This document shows, one piece after another, positions 9,498-64,000 of a DNA stretch of 64,000 nucleotides (position 1 is its first letter; each line of letters opens with the position of its first letter). The DNA comes from Rhodosorus marinus CCMP1338 (taxonomy: Eukaryota > Plantae > Rhodophyta): NCBI GenBank assembly GCA_029953675.1, contig JAMWBK010000002.1:3416315-3480314 (forward strand). Direction: 5' to 3'. The position numbers and the translations under genes were made by a program. Below the pieces are notes generated by a model that saw only the letters and a list, made by a program, of their open reading frames with translations, ran no database searches and was not told the DNA's origin.

Positions 9498-11948
9498 ATG
9501 AGGATTATGATAAAAGGTGGTGTGTGGAAAAATAGCGAGGATGAGATCCTCAAAGCTGCCGTGATGAAGTATGGTAAGAATCAGTGGGCAAGAATTTCTT
9601 CGTTGTTGGTGAGAAAGTCTGCGAAACAGTGCAAGGCCAGATGGTACGAATGGTTGGATCCGAGTATCAAGAAGACGGAATGGACGAGAGAGGAGGAAGA
9701 AAAACTCCTTCACCTGGCAAAGATTATGCCAACTCAATGGCGGACTATTGCACCCATCGTGGGAAGGACAGCTGCACAGTGCCTCGAGCACTACGAAAAA
9801 CTACTGGATCAGGCTCAGAAGGCTGAGGAAGATGGACAGGCGGGCGATGCTGCGGCAGGCGAGCTTACTGGAGCTGATGACCCGAGAAAACTTAGACCCG
9901 GTGAAATCGACCCTCAGCCGGAGTCCAAACCCGCGAGACCGGATCCCATTGACATGGATGAGGACGAAAAGGAGATGCTGTCTGAAGCTCGTGCAAGACT
10001 GGCAAACACTAGAGGTAAAAAGGCTAAACGCAAGGCTCGCGAGAAGCAGCTGGAGGAGGCTAAACGCCTGGCGCATCTTCAAAAGAGGCGCGAACTGTTG
10101 GCGGCTGGAATCAAGGTCCGTACTTTCCGGAAGAGCAGAAAGGACATGGACTATACAAGGGAGATTCCCTTTGAGAAGCGGCCAGCAGCAGGGTTTTTTG
10201 ACACCACCGAGGAAGATTTAAGGGCACAGAAAGAGAGACTGAACGCAAGTCAGGTTGGAAAGCTACTGGAGAAGTACGAGGGCAAGCGTCGAGATGATCA
10301 GGAGGCTCTGGAAAGGAAACGAGACGAAAAGAGAAGAAAGATTTTTGAGGAGAAGAACCTTCCACAAGCAATTGCTACTCAAGAAAAGAAGAACGAGCTA
10401 CCTTTCCTGCGCTCAAAGCTCCAGTTGCCCGCACCCCAAGTTTCAGATGCTGAGTTGGAGGCTGTTACGAAGGGCGGAAATGCGTCACGTGTTGCCGCAA
10501 TAACAGCCTCTGGTGGCAGCTCGGTGACGAAGGGATTGGTGGCAGACTATACCCCCTCGGTAGCGTCCAGAACCCCGATTGCGAGAACGGATACTGCAAC
10601 GCTCTCTTGGGAGCAAGTCAAAAACAGAGAACTCGCAAATCTGAGAGCGTACCATGCATCTTCCTCAGCACTGGCTGGGGGGCAGAATACGCCGGTCGTT
10701 GAGAGCGACTTCTCCGGAATTACTCCCAAGCGCCAAGTCTCGAGCACACCCAATCCGCTGGTCACAAAGACTCCTTCCACAGTTGCGGGAGCTTCACCCT
10801 CCCCGTCGGTTGGCACATCCGCGATGACTCCAAGGAGCATGTCCGCTCGAGATGGGTTCAGCATAAACGCGTCTGCTGAAATGGATGCTGCCGAAAAGGC
10901 TAAATTTTCGCTGCTGAAGAGGGACGTCCTGCGGGGTCTTGATGCTCTGCCGAAACCTGTTAACGAATATAAGGTTGTTGTCGACGAGGGTACTGTAGCC
11001 GCGGACGAAGAGGAGGCGGACGCTGATGACGCTATGGTTGAGGACGCACTCGACACGGAAGAAAAAGCCAGAAGAGCAGCGGCAGAGAAGGTTGCGGATT
11101 TAAGGGAGAGATACCTTTCTACTTCAGCCAAGAAGGAACTCCCGCGCCCTGGAAAGGAGAGCGTTGCTGGATTTCTTGCTAGAACAGACGCGAGACTAGC
11201 GAATTCCTCGAGACCCTTGCAAGCACAAGGCTTGGTAGAGAACGAAGTTCTATCCATGCTGATCAGGGACGATGCGGTGCTAACTGCATTAGAAAAAGGA
11301 TCTTCCGATAGTGATCGAGTACAATTCGCCGCGGGCGTTTTGGCCACAGGCGCCGAAGACGACGTCAACAAAATCAATAGAGCGAAGAAACTTGTGAAGA
11401 AAGACCTCGGTGATCTGGTTAAGACTACAAATGTGGACGCCGCTGTGGTGATTTCTGAGTTGGAAAAGTCAACGTTGGTGAAGCTCGATTCAAACAAGTA
11501 CGAAACTCTCCGAGCGAGGTCGTTCCAGATCCACTGCTGCGATCGGGAGGAAACCCTTCTGACCGAACTCGTTTTCTCTGTTCCCAGGAATGCTGAGGCC
11601 ATTAGTAAGGACCAGCTTGAGGACTTCGTTGAAATTTTGTCTTCTAGGTTGCAGGATACAAAGTCGAGAGTTAAGAGAATGGATCAACACCTCGACAAGA
11701 GGGAGAAAAAAACCGAGACGCTCTATCGTGGATACGTAAAGCGGTGGGAAAAGCTCTCGGGAGAACTCTCGGAGGCTTTTGATGAACTAGGGGAGGTGAG
11801 GGAAAAGCTTCACTGCTTCGAAAAACTTCGCGAAAACGAGGACAAGGCTGCCCCCCAGCGATTAGCCGATGCCAAAGCTCTATTCGCCGGAGAATCAGAA
11901 AGAGAAGCTGAACTTCAGGCTCGTTACAAGGGTCTCGTAGATGCTTGA
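9498..11948 (+). CDS. CDC5L: Pre-mRNA splicing factor CDC5/CEF1 (Myb repeats)
   Basis: MRIMIKGGVWKNSEDEILKAAVMKYGKNQWARISSLL...EARARLANTRGKKAKRKAREKQLEEA. Probable in-frame 69-nt intron at 11519-11587. Confidence 0.97.
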   Translation: MRIMIKGGVWKNSEDEILKAAVMKYGKNQWARISSLLVRKSAKQCKARWYEWLDPSIKKTEWTREEEEKLLHLAKIMPTQWRTIAPIVGRTAAQCLEHYEKLLDQAQKAEEDGQAGDAAAGELTGADDPRKLRPGEIDPQPESKPARPDPIDMDEDEKEMLSEARARLANTRGKKAKRKAREKQLEEAKRLAHLQKRRELLAAGIKVRTFRKSRKDMDYTREIPFEKRPAAGFFDTTEEDLRAQKERLNASQVGKLLEKYEGKRRDDQEALERKRDEKRRKIFEEKNLPQAIATQEKKNELPFLRSKLQLPAPQVSDAELEAVTKGGNASRVAAITASGGSSVTKGLVADYTPSVASRTPIARTDTATLSWEQVKNRELANLRAYHASSSALAGGQNTPVVESDFSGITPKRQVSSTPNPLVTKTPSTVAGASPSPSVGTSAMTPRSMSARDGFSINASAEMDAAEKAKFSLLKRDVLRGLDALPKPVNEYKVVVDEGTVAADEEEADADDAMVEDALDTEEKARRAAAEKVADLRERYLSTSAKKELPRPGKESVAGFLARTDARLANSSRPLQAQGLVENEVLSMLIRDDAVLTALEKGSSDSDRVQFAAGVLATGAEDDVNKINRAKKLVKKDLGDLVKTTNVDAAVVISELEKSTLVKLDSNKYETLRARSFQIHCCDREETLLTELVFSVPRNAEAISKDQLEDFVEILSSRLQDTKSRVKRMDQHLDKREKKTETLYRGYVKRWEKLSGELSEAFDELGEVREKLHCFEKLRENEDKAAPQRLADAKALFAGESEREAELQARYKGLVDA

Positions 11949-34170: not shown

Positions 34171-34261
34171 ACACCTGGACTTCAGTACATCGCAACCCCA
34201 CAACCCACCCACTCACACACCTGGACTTCAGTACATCGCAACCCCACAACCCACCCACTCA
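34171..34261. repeat. Tandem duplication, 46-bp period, 2 copies
   Basis: acacctggacttcagtacatcgcaaccccacaacccacccactca starts at 34171 and again at 34217, just upstream of the PSMA2 start. Confidence 0.95.
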
Positions 34262-35009
34262 TCTCACAACCCGATTAGGATCGTGAAAGCGTGCAGTGAA
34301 TCATTTCCATTCAAAAGCTCGACAGCACCCGATCGATAAAAATCGCCAGGGAGAGCCCCAGGGACGAGGTTCATTGAGCCCTTCTAGTTCAACGTTGATC
34401 CAACCATTTTCTGGTAGATTAACTTAAAAAAAGGATGTTAGGGAGAAAGCATAGCTGTGCAAACACAGTTTTTAACTTATACCGGTTTTTAGGTCTTAAC
34501 AAGACCTAAACCCTCTTAATCATGTGAACCTGATTGGCCTGGCCGTGTTCCTGATTCGGTTGTAAGCGTTAACACTAGTCATAATAGTAAGTCCTCAAAT
34601 GGATGTTGTGTATTCCACTTTAGCCGATTGTAACTTAAATTGTGGAAACTTTTAGTTTGGAGTGTTCTTAATTTTGACGACGGCTTGACATTCTCTGTCC
34701 GTGTTCGGACTCTTGGAAACCTGAAAGTCCGGACCTCAAAATTATAGTGGTCATGAAACTGTGCACTCTTGTAGCCATCACCAAGCACCTAGCAACCTAG
34801 CGCAACGCAAGCCTGACAGATCGGTTTAGTCGGAGGTCAAGGTTCCCAAATGAAGGAGCCTACGAAGAGCACAAAGAGCCTGCAGGCAGAGCAGAGGCAG
34901 CGCTACAGCCCCAGAGTGTCAGCCTCAAAGAAGCGTATAGTCAAGATATTGTACATAAAGACCAACGAAGCGCACTTGGGTCCAAGAGCTCGATGAGTAT
35001 CCGAACAAG

Positions 35010-35130
35010 GATGAGCTCCTCGAAGATCTACTTGACGAGCCTATTGAAAGTGTGCCTCTCCGAATTGAGGATGAGCTCCTCGAAGATCTACTTGACGAGC
35101 CTATTGAAAGTGTCCCTCTCCGAATTGAGG
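35010..35130. repeat. Tandem duplication, 60-bp period, 2 copies
   Basis: gatgagctcctcgaagatctacttgacgagcctattgaaagtgt(g/c)cctctccgaattgag occurs twice with one mismatch. Confidence 0.95.
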
Positions 35131-40220: not shown

Positions 40221-42166
40221 GAGATCCCTGGTGGCCGATGGTTGGACAGCCCCCATCCAGTGCACAATTTTGCTTCCAAGCCCTTGCTCTTACTGATAAT
40301 TCTATTGAAAACATTCGAAGAGTGGCAGAGTCGGAAAGCGTGGGCGAAGGTTTTGGGATGGCGCTCTCCCGAATCGCGTGGAAAGCAAACTTTGGCCTGC
40401 GCTTTCTTACAACCCCGTGAAAACCCAAATTCTTTGGTTTTTTCACGGGTCCGGACTGCGGAAAGATCCCCAACAAGGGTCGCACACCTCGAGCACTCTC
40501 GTCCGAAGATGTGATATTAGAAATCCGCATGGACTTTGCGGAGGCCGCCGACTGAATCTTCGATCTCTTAGATGGTTGGCCGCGCCTCAAACCAAATTAC
40601 TCCGAACGTCGTGTTCTTTCAACCTTACTATGGACGCTTTCAGGAATTTTTTGGAGGACCGGATAGGTGAGAAGTATCTTCCCGGACAATGCGCGCCTCT
40701 GCCAAGGGGGGACTCAACTTTTATGTGGTACCCTCTTGAGACTTTCTCACTTCTACTTTACAGCTTTTTTGCACTGTATCTGAATGAACGAATGATTTGA
40801 ATGAATCAAATGAATGAATTTGTTTAATCGGAGACTGAAAGAAAACCCGCGAGGTGCAAAAAAGGACTAAGCGCGGCGAAGATCGCGCCTCCAACATCAA
40901 AGCAGCGTTCATACGCCACGGCAAGAAACTTAAACGGGTAAACAACGAGGACAGACGGTCAGGGTGTTCGCAGATCAATTCCAGTATCTAAGGTCGACTG
41001 ACCCTAGAATTATCCATTTATGTATAGACGCTAGCCATAAAACAACTCGAAAAATCTGTTCAGAGTAGATGAGATATTCATGGGTTCTCAAAAGCGTGGG
41101 AACTTCATCTAGTTTGCGCAGGTCATTGTCCTCTCACCCCAGCTCTCAACCCTCCCCTGGAAAGAAGCTCATCCGAATTCTTTGAACGTGTTTCCGAAAA
41201 GCCGTTCCTGTAGGACTGTAGAACCAGCTTGTCTTCACTTTTACTAGGGGAATCAGCCTTCCCGATTGGAGTCTTGTAATGTAAGCAGTAAAAGCACATC
41301 TGGTTCAATGCATTTCTGAAGTTCCAAGTTCGAGACGCGCCGGCCTTCAGGACTGCCCACGAGTTACTCCTAGGACATCTGTTTAGGCCGGCATCGCTCG
41401 TGGGAAAGGGAAAGAACTGGGATCCAGATGCCGTGTGAGGGATCTGAGACCGGTCATCGTGGTCTTGCTCAGCCGTCCAAACGCTTCCAGAGCGATCGGC
41501 TTTTACTTAGGACTCGGATAGAAAACCAAGGTCAAGTCGACCTTAACTAGACAAAAGAAACAATATCAGTAGACCAAGACTAGAGACTGCGCGTCTAGGG
41601 CAAAAAGGCTGACATCATCTAGATGACCAACAAGGGGAAAAGCTAAAGAAAAGCCTTACTTGGAGCACGTCAGCCCAGTAGTGAACTTATGAGGATAAGT
41701 TGAATGCAGCCTGGCTGTGGTAGCCCAAGAGTTTCCTTTCCAATTGTCCATTGGAGGTCCCGCAGACAATGTCTACATGCTCCCAAAATTAACGAAACTT
41801 TTAGGAACCGTCTCCAAAGTTTAGGGCACTCTCGGCTTAATATTTGTACTACAAATTACGACAATGACGTTCAGCCCTCAGCTTGTATTATCGCCTTCCT
41901 CGCCTGCTCACGATTCCGAGGGAACATCAAAACGCTGATTTTACTGCGTTCTGCGTCGCATGTGCCAGATATGCACACGGGCAACGCACTTGCAGGAACG
42001 AGGGGTTTTTGCTCGTGACTTTCGCTCTGAAGAAGGGAATTCTCATATCATACCTGTATCCCGCCCAGGGCTCCGGAGTGAATGGGTAAACTTTTGTGAA
42101 TCCGTGAGTAGCAGGCAGTACTGATCGAGGTTCTGGCAAGCTTGGGAAAAGGCTGAAGGCATTCAG

Positions 42167-43351: not shown

Positions 43352-45193
43352 ATGAAAATCGAACATCTAGCGGAAATGGTTGGCGGGAGTCTTGCGTGTG
43401 ATGGACCGAAAGCTTGGTCAGAGACCTCTCAGCCGGGCTTTATACAGGTGCCGCCTGGCTCAAACAGAACATTGTTTGCGCGGAGACGTGCTGATGGTGT
43501 CTGCCTAAATGCTACGAGAGGTCCGCGAAGGGGTCGGCGAGGGGCCTCGCGAGGCGGAAACCGGCCGAGGCGTCATGGCGGGGGGAAAGCCGGCAATTTT
43601 GACGTTGTCATTGATATGGAACCGAAACCAGCAATACAAAGGCAGGTAGAGTATTACTTTTGCGAGGAAAACCTTCGCACTGATGACTTCCTTCAACGAA
43701 ACTTAGACGGAGACGGATTCTGCAGTATAAATATCATCTCAACGTTCGCACGCATACGAATCTTTACTGCAAAGTTGAAGGACGCGGGTGACCCGCGCCC
43801 AAGCGAGGAACTAATTGCAGATGCCATTAGGGAATCTCCTTACCTTGAAGTAGGTCGTGACTCTGGTCACCTACAAGTTAGAAGGGTGCTGAAATACAGC
43901 TTGAAGGATATATCTGGTGGAGTCCCGGTCACCGTTAAACCATCTAGAGCGTCTTCCTCAACGAAGGAGGAAAGGGGAGCTCCTTGCAAGTATCATTTTG
44001 CGGGTTACTGTGACAGAGGCAGTCGCTGCCCAAATACGCACAATATGGATTATTGTGACGCTATTGAGAGGCAGTGGATGAATCCGATCGGAAGCGGTTC
44101 TGCGTCGAAAACCGGACCCCTTGTGGACAAATTGAAAAAAATCTGTTCTCAGCTAGGTTTGTCCAGTCCGTCTTTGTCCTACGCCTCAAAAATGGTCAGG
44201 AGCAAGCTTGACGCTGCTCAAGCACGGACGGTGGGTGAGCGACAGGCTTTCGACTACTTCGTTGTAATTGATATCGAGGGTCAGCATGAGATTATAGAGT
44301 TTCCTGCCATTGTTTTCTCGACCAAAGGTCTAAGAGAGGTGAGCCACTTTTTTCTGAGCAAATCTCTGATCGCTCCTACTAGTTTCTGGTTATGCCTAGC
44401 CCCGCAGCGTTCGTTGAAATTTTCTGAAAGAGCGTGCGAAGAGAAACGTTTTGTTGCGTACGGACTCGATTAGTTTTTCCTGCTAAACTTTTCGTGGACG
44501 ATTCGGTGATTTTGCGCTCCCCCGCGCGCCTGTTCTAGGTTGGCAGATTTCATCGGTGGGTGAAACCCGTGAATCTTTGGCGTGGAAAAAGCCTGAATCC
44601 GCGGTCAGACTCTGTTCCCTTCTCTCAAGTGCTGAAGGAATTCGAGGCCTACTTGCGTGAACTCGGCTTAGTCGGTAAGTTATTGAGGTTGCATGGGCCG
44701 AAGCTGCCGTACCATTGAAGGGTGCAGGCTAAGTGTACGAACGTACTTCTTAGTCTGGGGTTAGACGGAGTGACGTGCTCAGAGCTGAGCTTCAGTAGGA
44801 AGAGAGATTCTCTAAAGTCGATGCTATGCATTCGCTTGTGTCCACTTTCGTAAACTAGGACGTAACAGCAATGAAAATCGGTTCGCAATGGTGTGCTGTG
44901 GAAACTGGGATGTCAAAACACAGATTCCAAAGCAATGCAAATTGAATGGCGTATCTGTGCCGAGGTACATGAGACAGTGGATTAATATCAAGGATGTTTT
45001 TAATGAGGTGTATGTTTCGAAGACGAAAGCGACCGGGATGAAGGCTATGCTTAGACGCAGTGGACTGGTAGGTACGGACGGCGCAGTGGAAGGAGTTCAC
45101 CACTTGGGTATGCATGATACAGAAAACATAACAAGAATTCTACTCCGATTGCTGGAGCAAAATGTGCAAATCGGTATAACTGGAAAACTGTAA
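43352..45193 (+). CDS. La-motif + CCCH zinc finger + ERI-1/ERI-3-like DEDDh 3'-5' exoribonuclease, 3 exons
   Basis: IQRQVEYYFCEENLRTDDFL (La motif); CKYHFAGYCDRGSRCPNTH (CCCH); VIDIEG...EIIEFP, CGNWD and HHLGMHD (Exo I-III). Introns at 44339-44538 and about 44675-44858. Start codon uncertain. Confidence 0.85.
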
Positions 45194-54628: not shown

Positions 54629-56049
54629 TTACTTCTTTTCCCTGTCATGTTTTTCACCGCTTCCGTCTTTTTCTTCTGTCTGCCCTTGCTGATCCGCCTT
54701 TGATATTTCGATGGCAAGTTTCATCTCCTCGTCCATCTCTTCGTCTATGACCGCCGATGTCTCTGTAGCACCCTTTCCAGAATCGGTGTCAATTGGCATA
54801 GCCTGGTCACCTATTTCATAGAGATCTTGGTCCCCATCTTGGGCTTCAACAGCCGGACCTCCAGCTTGTGGATCGTCGCGCTCCATCGCGGTTGGACCAG
54901 TCTGCAAGAAAAACCACGTGGTTAATCGCAAGAACCTAAGGAATTGCAGAATTTAAACCACGCTACTCGGGGAAAAGCTCACCGCGTCACCATCGCTTGG
55001 TTCTCCAGCCTGTTGCGCTGCCCTTTGCGCTTGTCGTTCTGTCTCTTCAGCCATTGAAAGCGTAAGTGCCATGGCCAGCTCTGGGTCCGCGGATGGATCC
55101 ACTCCGAAGGGAAACTCATTCGTTGAGCCATCTCCGACCCCAGCACCGTCCATATCGCCTACTGCTCCTTCCTCTAGCATTATCGCACTTCTGAGAAGCA
55201 CATCGCTTAGCAGTTGCCGTGCCGGGGGGACCGTCACGAGGTGACTGTTATTGTCCTTGTTCACAGCTTGAAGTAGAGTCTCCAAAGGAGGTCCGTTGTG
55301 GTCCTCTTCCCCAAAGTTGATAAGATCCAAAGCTACTCCGTTTCTTCTGAGGTCCGTTCCAACTTTCTGAAGTATTCCTTGCTCAATTGCAATCGGGCTT
55401 CCAAAAAATACCACGATCCTCTGCCTCTGCTGCTGATTCTGACGATGTTTAAGGGCGAGTTGAGCTTTTCTGATACTTGCCACATAATCACAGTGCCCAT
55501 CCACGTTCACCTAAGTTCGACAAAAAACAGCATCACTCAGATCATCATTCCGTGCCCCGAGCACCAGCATAGTACGAGCACAGAAGCCCAGAGAAAGCAA
55601 TCCAATGCGATCAGCTGCTCAAAGAGCAGCGAAAATTACGGGGGTCGGGAGCGTCCATGAGTGACATTCGACTCGCACCTGGTGCAAACTAGTTATGATC
55701 TGGCGGTCATCGTTTGTTTGAGTAACCAGCATCCGAGCGCTCTTTCCGGCCATCGTCAGGAGGCCGACCGTATTCTCCCTGTTTTGGCTGACCTTCGCAC
55801 TACATATTAGATTTGCCGCGTCGGCCTGTGCAGCCTACCGAATAGAAGAACGAATGGCGTCGTGCGTTAGGACCAAACCTCCGCAATCCAGGTTCTAGTA
55901 CACCCTCCGCGTGAAAGCATTCGCCTCCCGAGGCACTACAGTGTGTTGTGAGTAGAGCTCCAGTCACCTACCAATCGAGAAGGTGGATAGTCTCCGTTCC
56001 GCATCCATTCCGAATTGTCAATGCATACAATGGTTGCCTCGAGAACCAT
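54629..56049 (-). CDS. PSMD4: 26S proteasome ubiquitin receptor RPN10, multi-exon
   Basis: ATG at 56049 gives [21 protein letters not shown]; then [33 protein letters not shown], and UIMs [12 protein letters not shown] and [11 protein letters not shown]. Confidence 0.95.
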
Positions 56050-56223
56050 TCTGCACAATACACTTTGAAAAAAAAAAGCACGCAGTCGGCTCCTCTAGCT
56101 CGCTCTACTCGCAAAGTGAAAGTACCAATGCCTACCACCCCGTCCGCGTGCAAATTGAGAGCCCAATCCGTATTGAAAGAATGAGAAACCACCCCGATCA
56201 CGTTCGGTGCTGTCGCTCCTCGA

Positions 56224-56243
56224 AACCCCAGACTAACGTAACC
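56224..56243 (+). ncRNA. Candidate telomerase RNA template (or inverted interstitial telomeric 20-mer)
   Basis: AACCCCAGACTAACGTAACC is the perfect complement of one 16-nt terminal repeat plus 4 nt, with AACC at both ends. It is isolated, in a non-coding region, and opposite in orientation to the terminal array. Confidence 0.4.
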
Positions 56244-57402
56244 AGAGGAATTTGGACTCCAACACGACATGTTTTGAACTATCCATATTTGGGGACAAGC
56301 TGTCATTGCGAGGATTTGGTTCTGGGATGAATCGTGCGATATAATGTTGAAGATGGAATGCAAAGGACTGATTTCCTAATGGAACACTGCGAACTGATCC
56401 AGAACGCGTTTTGAAGGCCAGCCTGGCTGGAATGTTTCTTGTTTGCGCTCCACCTGCTGCTTCGTGGCTTCAGTTCATATTTTACCTTGGAACAGATGCG
56501 TTGACGGTCAAGTGCTATGCGTCATTCACCGACATGCTAGTGGGGGGGTTAAGGACGGTTTGTTACTAAAATTCTTGGCTGAGTCTATGCCGCAGTGCAT
56601 AAGCGGAGATCCAGCACCATATCGCAAGTCTAAGACTTTTTGCTGGGACTGCTAGTGGTTTCTTTCCTGTTCGTGAGTCCAGAGTTGTCCTGTTGCTGGG
56701 CTTATAAACACTGGAAAAGGGATAGCTGCTTCTTTCTACCTCGTGCTGGAGACGGAATTCGGCCGGAAAACAAGAATTGGTTTTGAAGCGTTCACGGTTA
56801 CGTTGTCGTCTGGCGTCTTGCTAGAAAATCATTGCAGAAGTCTTGAAAAGATGAGAAGCATTCTATAGCTTCGACAATGGGGGAATTAATGGGGCTTACC
56901 GCAAGATCGTGGTAACTGTCAACTCCTCTTGACATGTAAATACTGTCAGTGAATATTATTGGTGAGGTTCAATTATCGTCCACAAGGCGCCATCTTCGAT
57001 GCGACGTCCTGAATCTGGTCCGCGGGTGGCTGTGCACCGTTAGCCCAAAGCCCAGGCTTAGAGCAGCATTGGACCCCTAGTTGTACTCAGTGTTTTCAAG
57101 CGAAACGGAGTAGAGTACCCTACCGCCCCTGGCGAGCGGCTCTCCCAGCAAAAGGATCGTCCGAGTAAAAAAATTGAGACCCATCGCCGAAAACAAGTCC
57201 AGATCAACTTGCAACCTGGACCGCTACTTTCCGCACACCACGTCAGTGTACATTGTGGAACTAAAGATCAAAAGCAAGGGGGGTGGGACTCCAGTATTGT
57301 GGGATACCCTCTTGAGAATTTAACACTTTTTTATACTTCTTAGCTGTGTTCAATGGATTTGCTTAAGCGGAGACTGAAAGAAAAAACCCCCATAACGTAA
57401 CC

Positions 57403-60400
57403 GTGAACGCTTTACTAGAGGACTCCCTAGTGGAGCCCGCAAGGAAGGAAGAAGCAATCTATCTATGCGTTAAAAAACCCCCAAGCATGTAACCCCAAGC
57501 AATCTATCTATGCGTTAAAAAACCCCCTAGTGGGTTGTGTGGCTACGTTCTACGACAGGGACGATCTCATAGTTCCCTTCATCTATGCGCCGTGCCTGGG
57601 TGGCAAGTAGTGCATTGCCTTTCCATAGGGCTCGATTCAGCGTCGCCCGTGCTTCGCTCACTTGTGTCGATGGCTGATGCACGTGAAGAGTCACCTCTCT
57701 TAAAAATTGATCAGCTTGCGTACCCATCCTCCCGAATGTCTCCACACTGAAGGGAACGAATATGTCGTCATTGTGAGCTCCGATCACATCACGGTATTTC
57801 GACTCTTTGAACTTCTCTGCCTTGTGCGCAGCGTACCCTGTCTCCCAGGACGCTTTGTGTACGTATGTCTTTTGCAACGGCGAGGTCACTTTTACGTCGA
57901 TCACGTACAGTTTCCCTGTCCGAGGATGCCGAGCCGGAATGTCAGGGCGGAGGTGGATGCTTGGGTAGTGTCCGCTCGGTTCCATGGTCACCTCGAGTCT
58001 CCATTGTCGCAGTTGCGTCGCTAGAGCGTCTCGAACCATGTTGTGTCTCAGCGTCCAGCTCCCTGTAGAGTTCTACAGGGAGCTGGACGCACCAGTTGGT
58101 GCAGTGGTACAGCCGTTGGGTACCTGCAGAGTCGTGGGGTTGTGAACATATAGTACATGTACTAAGTGTTCGTACTCCTGGCATCGGCAATCCAAGCAGT
58201 TGTCTCAGGCTCAGGTTCACTTCGTCCGTGCTCAGTCCGCGTGGGTGTCGCGAGGGAAAGTCTCGCAGCCATGTACCGCCTCCAGATCCCGTGCATGAAC
58301 GCAGGCGCGCACGTACTGTCTCACTAATCTCCGCGTTCTCCACCAATTCCTCGAACGCCCGTCCGTGACTCCACGTCGAGAGGAGTTTTTGTTTGGAACC
58401 GATCAGGGGCTTTTCGGCGCGGGGTGGTGGGGTCCCTTCTGCTGTCTGGATGTCCAGCTATTTCCAGTCTGTTATACAGACGATCAGTGCTGGTGAACCT
58501 CGTGTAAGGCTGCGCTTGGATTGCAGACTCGCTTCGATGAGCTGCTCACATAGTTGCTGGGTAGAATGCAGTAGTGGTCTAGGGCCTCGGTATTCGTCTG
58601 TGTTCGTTGTCGTACACGAGAGGCGTAGCTCGTCTAGGTAGCTCGTCCAGTTGTGCTCCAGAGTTTGTCGCCAACTGCTGAAAAAGGCATGCGGTTGAAT
58701 CCTCGAGCACATTGCTAGGCCTGCTCCACCCCATCGGCAGGGGAGTTGAATCTGCGCTTGGACCTCGTCTTTTTCCGCCTACGAGAGTCCTTGGCCTTGC
58801 AGTAGCGACCCGCAAAGCTTGTCGAGCTCTATCAGTGAGATGCGGTCAGCTTCGAGTGCTAGAGTGGCACCGTATGGCAGGGCCAGAGTGCGGAGAAAGT
58901 AATCCAGGCGCGGTCCTGCGCAATAACGGAACAGGCACAGTTTAGTCTGCAGTTCAGGTGTCGGTAGGCGTATGATTTCATGCACTAGCTTCTCGTGCTC
59001 TCTTTGTAGCCTCCGGATGTCAGTTTGCCCGTAGTTCCTGGTGCCGATTGGGATGGAGAAGAGGTGGATTCCGTCTCGTGTCACGGTCACGTCGGGGATT
59101 TCTCGGTTGACGAGTCGAGTTGTCTGCAGGTGGCGACCGAAGAGCTGGCATTTTGTCCGCTGTAGTTTGGCTCCAATCACGGGCAGATGTGGCTCACTCC
59201 ATTGTAGCGCTTCGTGGACCTCAGGTAGAGAGCCTAGAAGGGTGATGTCGTCGTGTATCGCTGTGATCGTGAGCGTCGGGTGCCGATCGCGCAGTGCTCG
59301 CAGAAGCGGGGACAGGGCCAGCGCGTGCAAGGCGGGTCCCAGGGGGTCGCCGTGCTGGACACCAGTGCATGCCCGAAGCTGCAGCCAGTCCTCGGCATTC
59401 TTCTCATACCAGCCGAATTGGTGGGGTGCGCTTTCCCCATTGAGTCCGTAGCCGAGGGTCATCAGCGGTCGCAGTTCAGGAAAAGCGTGTGCGATGATCC
59501 GGTTCGCGATGCGTCTGTCGATCAGGTTGAACGCATTCTCGAGGTCGAGTTTGAGGACTACATCGTCCGGTTTGGCGGCAAGGTGAGCTTCCGCGAGGTG
59601 CAGGGCGTGTTCGCATCCTCTGCTAACCGAGATGCCGAGTTGCTCGGGGAGGAGAAAGTCACGAAGGGGCTTAACGACTGCGCGAAGGGTCCACTGGGTC
59701 ACAGCTTTCCTCAACACCTCAGGTATCCCGAGCGGGCGAAGTCGCAGAGGCTCGCCTTGTGAGGTCGCGGAAGGTGTCCTCTTGTCTTTCGCGAGGAGGC
59801 GGTTGCTGCGCATGGCTTGAAGAAAAATTTCCGGAAAGCAATTTCCGGAAAGCTCTCCGGATTCGTAGCCAGTTTTCGGAGAAAACGGAGAAGCACGGGT
59901 TGGGTCCTCATCGTCAGACAGCGCCTGTGCTCGGCTTTAAGACCACTCGGCCCGGGGCCAGTGGCGTACGGTAGTTTTTCGAGCGTTGACCGTAGGCTCT
60001 CATCAGAGGCCAAAGTAGGATTCCAAACTTCTCGATCTGTGCTAGACAGTTTCGCCTGTAGGGCGTCCTCGAGCTCAGAAGAGAGACTTGCGGCCTCATA
60101 CTCTGGGAAAAGCGTGGTCAGAGTTCGCCAGGTGGCGAGGGTTTTGGGCGCGAGATCAGTCGACAGCAGGAGTTGACTAGACTGCGAGAGGCGCTGAGAT
60201 TTGGCAAGTTGAAGAGCTCGTTTGTGTCGATGACGCGCAGGGGTCGGCGGAGCTGTCGTAGTGTCGTCGTCGCGGGCTCCGCTATGGTGGGTAAGGTGCT
60301 CCCATACTATGGCAAATCTTCCGTTAAGGATTTCGATCATCTGCGCAGAAGGGGCAAGTTCTTCCCTATGACCCAGTGCAAGACTTGGGAGAGCGAAGAT

Positions 60401-60452
60401 AAACAGGCGTGACAAGTTTGGGGTGGGAGGTTGAGGTGACACGAGCCGGGAC
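57403..60452 (-). mobile_element. CRE-clade-like non-LTR retrotransposon (RT + CCHC + RLE), 5'-truncated and frameshifted
   Basis: RT motifs LRPLGIPE, KLDLENAFN, GVQHGDPLGP and AIHDD; AWL/LGLP/CxxC region; RLE motifs RHNMVRD, EP, RPD, IDVKV and FVPFSVETFG. At least 3 frameshifts. The 3' UTR ends TAAAGCGTTCAC next to GGTTACGTTA. Confidence 0.88.
57452..57527. repeat. 31-bp direct repeat (45-bp period) in the retroelement 3' UTR, with telomere-like G-runs
   Basis: aagcaatctatctatgcgttaaaaaaccccc at 57452 and 57497. The spacer contains gtaacccca (GGGGTTAC on the minus strand). Confidence 0.9.
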
Positions 60453-60512
60453 TAATTTTGGACGGCTTTGTTTGTGGAAAACGACGGTAAAAGCTGATAA
60501 GCAGTTACACGT

Positions 60513-61158
60513 ATGATTGTGAAGGAGGTACTCGGGCCGTACCCCGAGCCTCTTGTGATCCCGGGCCCACACACCTCGGGTACCCGCGAAATGGAGAGGG
60601 AGAAAGAACTGCCGCAACAGCACCAGTATAGGGGAGCAGAACAGGAGGCAGAGAGGAATGCAGAACACCGTGCAGTGGAGCAGGCTACAGCAGACCCAGC
60701 TGTCGCCTTTCTCCAGCTGCAGAGCTACGACCAGTGCTACCAAGCGCTGGGAATCGGCCAGTCTGACATCGTCGACTTCTACCAGGCCGCCTTCAACCTT
60801 TATTCGCGGATCAATTGTACGCAAGAACTGCAAGGAGAGACAGCACGACTGAACGAGTTAGCCAAAAAACCGCATATGTGGCAAGACAGACGAGCCACCA
60901 CGAACCCGCCTCAACCCCCGCAGCAGCACCCGCGGACGACGGCAGTCAATCAACATGCCCCAGAACCGATCAACAATCAACTTCCGGAGGGGACAGGTGT
61001 CCCAGCCTCACTGGACTATGCCACGGCATTCCCTGTTGTCGGGACCAGCAGCACACGGCCAACATACGCTCAGAGGACTGTCCAAAATACTCCAGCTCGA
61101 GAATCAGAGGCTCAACTCCGCGCAGCCGGGCGCCCGGGCCCACAGAGCCAGCAGGCAG
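60513..61158 (+). pseudogene. Truncated ORF1 copy A of the telomeric retroelement
   Basis: Strongly similar to ORF 61279 (MIVKEVLGPYPEPLVI vs MIVREVRGPYPEPLVI). It stops abruptly at telomeric repeats at 61159. Confidence 0.8.
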
Positions 61159-61222
61159 GTTAGTCTGGGGTTTAAAAGCTTACGGTTACGTTAGTCTGGG
61201 GGGGTTAGTCTAGAGTCTGGGG
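61159..61222 (+). repeat. Interstitial telomeric island (degenerate)
   Basis: gttagtctggggtt-taaaagcttac-ggttacgttagtctgggggggttagtc-tagagtctgggg. Confidence 0.92.
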
Positions 61223-63420
61223 TAAAAGGCAAAGTTCGTACGGAAGACAACAACAAAAGTTCGTAAGAAAGTTCGAAGATGATCGTGAGGGAGGTACGCG
61301 GGCCGTACCCCGAACCTCTTGTCATTCAGGGCCCGGACCCCTCGGGCACCCGGGAAGTTTTGCAAAGGCACCAGCACCAGTCTGATGGCGACGTGCAGGA
61401 GACACCGACGGAACCACAAGCAGGCGATGTTCAAGCAAGAACGCGGACCGAGTCTGCAGCCGCAACCGACCCGGCAGCCACATTCTTGCATCAACTGCGT
61501 AGCTTCGACAGATGCTACCAGGACCTGGGCATCGCTGCTTCCGAAATTACAGACTTCTACAAAGCCGTTTTTCAACTGTACTCGAGGGTCAACAGCTCGC
61601 AAGAGCTGCAAGGTGTCACCGGACGCCTTACGGAGTTGTCCCGGAAACCGGGTATGTGGGAAGGTGGAGCCGCTACTACGAATTCTGCACCATCTCCGCA
61701 TGATCTCCCGCGAGATCTCCCGCGACAGGCCGTAGGCAACCACCTCGGCCCCGAAACCCGTTACCGTAACGGTCGTCTGCCAGGAAGTTATGCCGTCCAT
61801 GATTTAGGAACCCGGCTCCCTGCGCCCCATGGAGGGACAGGTGTCCGAGATCTAGGACACTATGCGGAGACATTCCCAGCCATCGGGGAGGGCCCTACAA
61901 GGCCAACCTTCGCTGATTTCGAAGCACAAAAAGAACCAGCGAGAGGAGGAGATGCTTGTTCCAGAACTTGTGGACGCCCTGGACCCCAGACCCAACAGGC
62001 TGCCCTACGGCAACTGCACGCTACGGTCGGGGGGTCTGGCTGGGGACCCGATGTTGCTCCAGTCCTCGCGACGCTACGGAATGTCCGACCCCCAAGGCTG
62101 GATGAGGTGGCCCCTGCGGAGTTTGCAACGGTTCTTTGCAGAGCACTGGGTATGCCCAGCTCTTATGTGGTGCATGTGGACTTTATTGCCTCCCATGCCT
62201 GCCTGCTGTGCAATTCCGATTCTCCAAAGTGCCATCTCCCGAGGAGTTTTCCGGACTGGGATATTCGGATCCTTCACACAACGACACGCCGATAGACAAG
62301 TAAGCCTTTACACTGGCCAGGCGCTGGACCCAGACAACCTTCTGGGTTACCTCGAACGTCAGACCATCGCTCCCGGGGATATCGCTGCCCACACGCTGAA
62401 GCGGGCCATCGAGCAGCTTGTCCGCATTCGTTCGAGGATCGGCAGGCGACAACTCTCCTTCCACACTCTCGCAGCGCTCTGCGAGTTTCTGGAGGCACGA
62501 ATAGAGCTCCTAAAAGGCAGACAACATCCGCCTGAGGTGCCCGGGGAGTGCGCGGAACCCCCTGGGCCTGCAGCCGCTTCGAACGCAGACCCTGAAGCCT
62601 CGTCCATTCCAGGGGATGTACAGGCAGACCGTGGGACAGTTGACGCCCAGGTTGAGACTAGCGCGACTTCCCAAGTACCTGAGAACGCAGCACACGATGA
62701 CAATCCCCATGCGGAGCTCCTCTGCAACCTTCCGGAGCCACCTCAACAGAAGCGCTCGCGAGTATCCGCCGATGGAACCGGACCGGATACTGAGATGACT
62801 CCGGCAGCCGTGGAGACTCCACCGGATACCACTGTGACACAGGTTGCCCTTGACGGCAACCATCACGCGATGGACACGCAGGAGAGCCAGGAAAACCCAG
62901 CGCAATAATGCCGAGCAGACGTAGGGGAATCAAACGACGCCGCGACGAGCCTCTATTCTTCTCGGATCGTCAAGACTGGATCAGGCGGTGGAGCGTCTTC
63001 GTCGACGACGTCACGGAAGGAGGCAGGCAGTGGACGCGCCTTACACACTGCCCGGTTCCCACACGGCGATTTGTGCCACGCGCCCAGGTTCAAACATGGA
63101 GCTGCCTCTTCCGTGCTGCAGTAGAGCTCTCTATGGACACCACCGCACCAACAAACGCCAGCCTGCTTCTTGTCGGATTTCCAGGCCTGGTCCTTGAACA
63201 CTCTGCACTTGATGTTGGCATTCAGGTATCGCATGTGCTTGAAGGAGAATTCTCCACGGTCTGGAGCGCTCTAGAGGACAAGGCGTCTATGCTGTCGCAT
63301 ACTACCGCACCGCAAGGAGCTGAAGCGGTTCGACGCAAACATCTCGGGCGCCACAAGCGAGCGCTGAAACTAGCACACCTTGGCCGCCTTTCAGATGCAG
63401 CTCGGAGCCTACAGGCCACC
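61223..63420 (+). mobile_element. Second retroelement copy B: 5' UTR, ORF1 (61279-62908, one frameshift near 62220) and ORF2 N-terminus (from 62908), 3'-truncated
   Basis: ORF2 segment LLVGFPGLVL...GEFSTVW...RHKRALKLAHLGRLSDA aligns with the minus-strand copy LFIFALPSLAL...GRFAIVW...RHKRALQLAKSQRLSQS. It is cut by a telomere repeat at 63421. Confidence 0.82.
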
Positions 63421-63441
63421 GGGGTTACGTTAGTCTGGGGT
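63421..63441 (+). repeat. Interstitial telomeric island (21 nt)
   Basis: ggggttacgttagtctggggt, fused in-frame to truncated ORF2 and followed by about 130 bp of unrelated DNA. Confidence 0.92.
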
Positions 63442-63598
63442 GACTTTTTGCGGGACAGTTGTAAACACTTGTTGCATCGAGATGAGGAGCTGAGGGATGC
63501 ACGATCCCAGTTAAATGGCACCTTTGGCAGGGGACCGCGGCTATTGCGCTTGGAGACAACTACAAGCGCTCTTTAGTCTGGAGAACCCACTGGTTACT

Positions 63599-64000
63599 GT
63601 TAGTCTGGGGTTACACGTTAGTCTGGGGTTACGTTAGTCTGGGGTTACGTTAGTCTGGGGTTACGTTAGTCTGGGGTTACGTTAGTCTGGGGTTACGTTA
63701 GTCTGGGGTTACGTTAGTCTGGGGTTACGTTAGTCTGGGGTTACGTTAGTCTGGGGTTACGTTAGTCTGGGGTTACGTTGGTCTGGGGGGTTACGTTAGT
63801 CTGGGGTTACGTTAGTCTGGGGTTACGTTAGTCTGGGGTTACGTTAGTCTGGGGGGTTACGTTAGTCTGGGGTTACGTTAGTCTGGGGTTACGTTAGTCT
63901 GGGGTTACGTTAGTCTGGGGTTACGTTAGTCTGGGGTTACGTTAGTCTGGGGTTACGTTAGTCTGGGGTTACGTTAGTCTGGGGTTACACGTTAGTCTGG
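63599..64000 (+). repeat. Telomeric array, 16-bp unit GGGGTTACGTTAGTCT, about 25 copies, running off the window end
   Basis: Near-perfect tandem repeat with the G-rich strand 5'->3' toward the end. Variants: TTACACG (63611, 63985), G6 (63785, 63851) and GTTGGTCT (63777). Confidence 0.93.

Follow-up and report, generated by a model that had tools for sequence, protein, structure and literature searches.

At the right end of contig JAMWBK010000002.1 of the red alga Rhodosorus marinus CCMP1338, a single perfect telomere unit of 20 nucleotides (nt), AACCCCAGACTAACGTAACC, lies 7.35 kb inward of a terminal array of the 16-nt unit GGGGTTACGTTAGTCT and 175 bp from the ATG of RPN10. The 64,000 nt that close this contig, here called the window, were analysed throughout (a window coordinate plus 3416314 gives the coordinate in the record). 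An earlier note on this DNA had taken the 20-mer for the template of a telomerase RNA (TR) gene, an interpretation that is undecided and, on balance, unlikely. We favour, at about even chances, the view that the 20-mer is an interstitial telomeric unit without RNA function. Both its mode of origin and its lack of function are points that we infer, and all probabilities attached to the readings below are likewise inference and not measurement. According to the proposed sequence of events, a DNA end would have been broken or rearranged near an old chromosome terminus, telomerase would have copied its template once (GGTT...GGGGTT) onto that end on the minus strand, and the end would then have been rejoined, leaving the unit as a footprint. 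Such a footprint would still record the full template span, 5'-AACCCCAGACUAACGUAACC-3', with the TR gene itself lying elsewhere in the 31-Mb genome.

The genome of R. marinus CCMP1338 is a 31.2-Mb Nanopore assembly with a BRAKER annotation supported by RNA-seq, in which telomeres are reported on twelve contigs and the telomere sequence is not stated (PMC10250338). Red algal telomere motifs have been described as fragmentary (PMC7046594). The 16-nt motif was not mentioned in the literature that we searched with 10-mers of all its rotations on both strands, and red algal entries for the unit are absent from the TeloBase supplements.

A perfect telomere unit among telomere-unit islands

All 20 nt of the 20-mer are complementary to the terminal array over 1.25 units (22 of 23 if CGA is counted against CGT); the array itself contains variants of its unit with GGGGGG runs or an extra AC. 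The 20-mer is the sole C-type site on the plus strand of the window, even when up to three mismatches are allowed. The earlier description of a single perfect C-strand 20-mer bracketed by AACC is borne out by this one plus-strand site, an exact reverse complement of the array, and its stated distance from RPN10 is also correct: the ATG lies at 56049 on the minus strand, and the spliced gene model agrees with the deposited protein. The 20-mer is interstitial telomeric sequence in that its 1.25 units stand away from the array and other islands nearby share the register of telomerase synthesis.

These islands were found by scanning the 64-kb window for exact matches to the tandem telomere unit. 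Besides the 20-mer, they lie at 44750-44763 (14 nt), 56796-56804, 57393-57402, 61159-61172, 61184-61201 (18 nt), 61214-61223 and 63421-63441 (21 nt). Four sites of at least 12 nt were observed against 0.12 expected by chance, and three islands in this window are at least 18 nt long. GGTTAC starts recur at 56796, 57402 (minus strand), 61184 and the beginning of the array (63592), and GGGGT(T) ends at 44762, 61172, 61223 and 63441; read on the minus strand, the 20-mer has these start and end points too. The common register that had been proposed for the 20-mer and the islands near 61159-61172 and 61184 is upheld by these boundaries. The recurrence in the window of isolated units that start and end as it does makes a relic origin of the 20-mer more plausible. 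The perfect 14-mer at 44750 lies 19 kb from the chromosome end within an intron, in unique DNA, and about 0.008 matches of such length are expected by chance; isolated units are therefore not confined to retroelement junctions.

The position of the 20-mer is consistent with the same origin. A subtelomere made of R2-like retroelements and telomere-unit islands has its inner edge here, and an inverted subtelomeric segment adjoins the 20-mer, namely a minus-strand retroelement (57400-60450) with an inverted island at its 3' end. The relic unit that the earlier note had offered as its alternative is strengthened by the recurring islands, by the unit at 44750, and by the inverted retroelement with its inverted island 1.15 kb away. 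The note's chance expectation of 2e-6 for the 20-mer stands as a figure for random sequence and fails as a null, since the window holds seven other listed islands; it is not decisive because subtelomeric processes make telomere-unit islands non-randomly. The AACC bracket is likewise predicted equally by a template and by a footprint, as one telomerase pass over a 20-nt template yields GGTT...GGGGTT. A recent footprint of a single telomerase round would be expected to have every positive TR feature of the locus as well, and a single TR gene in 31.2 Mb gives any 64-kb window a prior of about 0.2%. If the island rate of this window is at all typical, the genome would hold tens of template-like sites.

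Telomerase is described in primates and rodents as a source of short interstitial telomeric sequences, which it inserts at double-strand breaks. Like such sequences, the 20-mer is isolated and perfect, lies in unique DNA, has telomerase-register ends and is one of several such units in its region. Unlike them, it comprises 1.25 units of a 16-nt repeat and has a retroelement-rich subtelomere alongside, and its insertion is here presumed.

The retroelements account for other islands of the window. At least two R2-like subfamilies, with 30% amino-acid identity, occupy 57400-63576, a span without annotation in the deposited record; one copy is inverted, and plus-strand copies of another subfamily lie at 60476-63576. 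The reverse transcriptase of the inverted copy matches RVT_1 (E = 1.5e-12), and its best solved-structure matches are R2 proteins (E about 1e-3). The C-terminal open reading frame (ORF) at 57527-58039 bears an RPD...YVIDVK motif, read by eye as a putative restriction-like endonuclease. The 3' terminus of the elements, AAGCGTTCAC, abuts GGTTACGTT at 57393-57412 (minus strand) and 56786-56815 (plus strand), and the same junction occurs in the form TAAAAGCTTAC at 61173-61201 (plus strand). The fixed join of AAGCGTTCAC to GGTTACG suggests, from the sequence of these junctions, that the R2-like elements insert specifically into telomere repeats. The R2 group consists of site-specific retrotransposons without long terminal repeats (non-LTR) that carry a restriction-like endonuclease, and TRAS and SART of Bombyx are telomere-repeat-specific long interspersed nuclear elements (LINEs). 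The elements of this window resemble these in their R2-like reverse transcriptase, their PD...D.K-type C-terminal motif and their fixed telomere-unit junction. The 20-mer, unlike R2, TRAS and SART junctions, is not joined to a terminus, and the elements explain the other islands, not the 20-mer directly.

The degenerate relics that had been noted near 56786 and 57394 are both real, and together (56786-56815 and 57393-57412) they form a perfect 19-nt inverted repeat. The plus-strand relic follows a diverged element fragment, GATAG-CTGCTTCTTTCTACCT, which aligns weakly to the 3' untranslated region (UTR) of the element over about 75 nt, 9 of 300 shuffles scoring equally well; the whole of 56720-56815 resembles an insertion, old and 5'-truncated, into what was once a telomere. 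A simple inversion between the two relics was considered as the source of the C-orientation of the 20-mer and is ruled out, as the 20-mer lies outside the arms. A 10-nt gapped resemblance, GGAGT..CCTCT, stands beside both inverted islands (56244-56260 and 57418-57427); its chance estimate is about 0.05, and it was not used.

Several observations weigh against a unit without function. The 20-mer is perfect at 20 of 20 nt while the nearest islands (56796 and 57393) carry indels, a perfection that selection would explain and that recent origin would explain equally. Its flank lacks the AAGCGTTCAC terminus present at three other islands and has no significant similarity to the element, and its orientation, with the C-strand on the plus strand, is the less common one among the islands. 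Downstream of it, 470 bp are unique and non-coding, which is how an RNA gene would look too. Finally, the island rate assumed for the genome is extrapolated from this window alone.

The telomerase RNA reading and other origins

As a functional TR gene, which we regard as unlikely, the locus would be transcribed into a plus-strand non-coding RNA starting at about 56100-56220 from a promoter common with RPN10. The template would be AACCCCAGACUAACGUAACC; its AACC-3' would align the GGTT end of the telomere, copying would stop after GGGGTT, and the RNA body would fall within about 56224-56715, the last stretch of unique sequence ahead of old telomere remains. The argument for such a gene begins with the template-like sequence. 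In Kluyveromyces lactis, the TER1 RNA has a 30-nt template for a 25-nt repeat, with 5-nt terminal direct repeats. The 20-mer, a perfect unit with a 4-nt terminal direct repeat (16 + 4) in single copy within non-coding DNA, has this design of long-repeat yeast templates. What sets TER1 apart from the candidate, which is known here from its template-like sequence, are its transcript, Sm site, pseudoknot and template boundary helix; the host of the candidate is, moreover, a red alga, and the 20-mer has telomere-unit islands around it and the chromosome end at a distance of 7.4 kb. A 20/20 match to 1.25 units with an AACC overlap at both ends is the only TR-defining feature that was tested and found, and it is the observation itself. 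A gene would also fit a downstream body that is unique in the window and has no protein match, a 20-mer that is unattached to a retroelement terminus and is perfect among degenerate islands, and starts and stops of the other islands that agree with the ends of this template.

Searches for homologues and transcripts returned little for this locus. Rfam 15 gave no TR match at gathering score across the whole window, or at E up to 10 in 3 kb and 0.64 kb; this negative is weak because red algal TRs are undescribed. TR searches have been without success for Rhodophyta (PMC9841428) and for Galdieria (PMC8287931), so a mismatch with the known families would be expected of a red algal TR, and no later report of one was found in the literature. 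Comparison of 56244-56715 with the rest of the window gave no blastn or tblastx similarity. The same result, together with a flank that has no significant alignment to the element 3' UTR, rules out the 470-bp body as part of the neighbouring retroelement. A six-frame protein query with 56050-57450 returned no match; it is a weak negative, since the 96-aa protein annotated there was not returned either. Two transcript contigs of a relative (JGI 3300016967; 87-89% nucleotide identity) start at window position 55708, short of the locus. An RPN10 gene with 55% identity is found on a Logan contig where a ribosomal protein L13 gene is called upstream; synteny upstream of RPN10 looks lost there, the stretch between the two genes being unread. 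Exact look-ups for CCMP1338 in the Logan assemblies gave no match, and a metagenome scan for the core 17-mer CCCCAGACTAACGTAAC gave 10 single matches, none similar to the window, which we judged to be chance.

In plants and ciliates, RNA polymerase III makes the TRs from type 3 promoters, and no conserved upstream sequence element (USE) was found in red algae except in Galdieria (PMC8287931). Red algae share the Archaeplastida with land plants, and a short template near the 5' end of a small RNA is the design to be expected. The locus differs from plant and ciliate TRs in its lack of a recognisable USE and TATA upstream, in a T4 run 29 nt after the unit and in having no Rfam telomerase match. 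Inspection of 56050-56223 by eye revealed no TATA or USE-like pair, the USE sequence of Rhodosorus itself not being established. T4 runs lie at 56272-56275, 56411 and 56481, and the first T5 at 56636-56640; the first of these T4 runs counts against transcription by RNA polymerase III, as in plant and ciliate TRs (PMC8287931), though not against transcription by RNA polymerase II. For 56190-56720 on the plus strand (531 nt), the folding energy is -148 kcal/mol and that of shuffles -159.6 ± 6.4 (z = +1.81), and there is no excess folding stability on either strand of the locus. Plus-strand windows of 120 nt from 56050 to about 57340 have z between -1.6 and +1.8, none lower, and a lone lower window (z = -2.5) at 57370-57489 falls within the repeats of the retroelement 3' UTR. 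Together the fold results are mild evidence against a compact structured RNA.

The helices that had been proposed around the 20-mer consist of sequences that are indeed present: TCCTC and GAGGA on its two sides, and GTTCTGG (56320-56326) with CCAGAAC (56399-56405) downstream. A further short helix can be drawn between TCCTCG and a CGAGGA at 56309-56314. The significance of the TCCTC/GAGGA pair is marginal, with a chance estimate of a few percent. When the 20-mer is left out, its flanks join as TCCTCGA and AGAGGA into a short palindrome, so the pair may pre-date the 20-mer and not serve it. As a stem it would close the template tightly into a 23-nt loop, and we know of no TR with a stem that encloses its template in this way. 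A spliced minus-strand model, the only one that the deposited annotation has there, also overlaps the proposed RNA body (56566-56935), and the low prior for a single-copy gene in this window is to be set beside the existence of other isolated units. That the locus holds the first TR of any red alga, an RNA of about 0.5 kb on the plus strand, divergent from RPN10, standing as the last gene before the telomere and specifying an unusually long 16-nt repeat by a 20-nt template with 4-nt terminal repeats, is unlikely.

The 20-mer might instead be a cis-regulatory site, a unit kept in the RPN10 promoter for a telomere-repeat-binding protein, which we think distinctly unlikely. A precedent exists in the telo-boxes of land plants, well-known short telomere motifs of housekeeping-gene promoters and introns, and the 20-mer is like them in bringing about one telomere unit close to the start of a housekeeping gene. 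Both the 20-mer and the unit at 44750, which would be a second site of this kind, lie in unique DNA at positions of a regulatory type, the former 175 bp ahead of an ATG and the latter inside an intron, and the two share the core TTAGTCTGGGGTT, perfect in each. A telo-box would be expected to recur in many promoters, 5' UTRs or introns, however, and the 56 kb of unique DNA in the window, with about 20 genes, contain only two perfect core sites; the sites with two mismatches (30903 and 52752) are at chance level, and the binding protein is hypothetical here. Protein binding would moreover not require a match of 20/20 nt, and non-coding DNA is where insertions should survive in any case. A further explanation, which we rate as very unlikely, makes the locus a pseudogene retrocopied from a TR. 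An R2-like reverse transcriptase inserting at an old telomere would first have copied its own 3' end over about 80 nt and then switched to the telomerase RNA, which it would have copied to its 5' end. Chimeric small-RNA/LINE retrocopies such as mammalian U6-L1 are an established precedent; the order and shared plus orientation of 56224-56715, 56720-56795 and the island 56796-56815 fit such an event, which would also account for the subtelomeric place of the 20-mer and for its C-strand on the plus strand. The 5' side, on the other hand, has neither telomeric repeats nor a target duplication, only the RPN10 promoter; the homology of the element fragment is as weak as described above; and a decaying pseudogene is not expected to keep 20 of 20 nt.

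Annotated genes and repeats of the window

The features discussed here are collected in the table below. The spliced 344-aa model of RPN10 is identical to KAJ8908299.1. The transcript contigs of the relative that cover RPN10 also join it to a convergent DUF4336 gene, which implies overlapping 3' ends or read-through (the assembly is unstranded). Distal to RPN10, the region that had been described as 1.3 kb free of ORFs is so in a loose sense: it is overlapped by mechanical ORFs, the longest of 131 aa, and by the annotated gene NDN08_008391. Our reconstruction of this gene is an exact match to KAJ8908300.1, whose protein cluster has one member. It is the last gene of the deposited annotation, and its coding sequence runs antisense through the retroelement/telomere relic; the protein is probably spurious, and the well-formed intron may hint at a spliced minus-strand transcript. 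Elsewhere in the window, a BT1 transporter ORF is an exact match to GCA_029953675.1.

Features of the 64-kb window, in window coordinates
Feature	Position	Strand	Remarks
Cdc5/Cef1 ORF	9498-11948		96% identical to NDN08_008376 of Rhodosorus marinus
Perfect 14-nt telomere-like unit TTAGTCTGGGGTTA	44750-44763	+	in intron 44677-44859 of a La/exonuclease (RNase_T-type) gene
RPN10, NDN08_008390	54629-56049	-	344 aa; introns 55835-55971, 55511-55678, 54902-54982
Flanking pair TCCTC / GAGGA	56217-56221 / 56245-56249	+	read directly
Perfect C-strand telomere unit AACCCCAGACTAACGTAACC	56224-56243 (record 3472538-3472557)	+	16 + 4 nt, AACC at both ends
Downstream body of about 470 bp (proposed RNA body)	56244-56715	+	unique in window, non-coding
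Orphan gene NDN08_008391	56566-56935	-	96 aa; deposited annotation; intron 56821-56899, 79 nt, GTAAGC...TCTAG
Diverged 3'-terminal fragment of R2-like element	56720-56795	+	ends in AAGCGTTCAC; collinear with shared terminus
Degenerate G-strand island GGTTACGTTGTCGTCTGGCG	56796-56815	+	abuts retroelement terminus
Dispersed repeat copy	57282-57384	+	second copy at 40706-40845
Inverted island GGTTACGTTA-TGGGGG	57393-57412	-	joined to terminus AAGCGTTCAC of minus-strand retroelement
R2-like non-LTR retroelement, inverted	57527-60442 (about 57400-60450)	-	reverse transcriptase ORF 58779-59813; C-terminal ORF 57527-58039
Terminal telomere array, 16-nt unit GGGGTTACGTTAGTCT	63592-64000	G-strand on +	about 25 copies

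Other repeats were observed in the window. The two copies of a dispersed repeat of about 100-140 nt share 68% identity over 104 nt and 91% over 33 nt, with the common blocks TACCCTCTTGAGA and CGGAGACTGAAAGAAAA, and the repeat has no Rfam match at gathering score. Within the inverted retroelement, 58051-58090 is an inverted repeat with two perfect 19-nt arms, GCGTCCAGCTCCCTGTAGA / TCTACAGGGAGCTGGACGC, and 2 nt between them; a hairpin site is one possible explanation and an artefact of the Nanopore assembly another. A 45-nt tandem duplication, 97% identical, lies at 57452-57530 in the 3' UTR of the same element, and in it the motifs AAAAAACCCCC and GTAACCCC resemble the telomere C-strand. Tandem duplications also occur at 34171-34261 (46 nt x 2, 100%) and at 35008-35130 (60 nt x 2, 98%).

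Implications for red algal telomerase RNA

Taken as an interstitial unit, the 20-mer belongs to an ordinary class of features; its lineage and its motif are ones for which we found no such description in the literature searched. As a TR candidate it has the template-like sequence only and is a member of no curated TR family. If it is a stray unit, as we favour, it is unremarkable for a subtelomere and warns against calling a lone template-like match a gene; if it were the TR gene, it would be the first red algal TR and would show a long template of the yeast kind outside the fungi. In either case, this unit and the points at which the islands begin and end suggest a telomerase template in R. 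marinus that spans 5'-AACCCCAGACUAACGUAACC-3'. A 16-nt repeat makes a template of at least 17 nt highly specific, so a genome-wide search should leave few candidates. The long repeat thus makes the search for a red algal TR tractable with the existing GCA_029953675.1 assembly and its RNA-seq.

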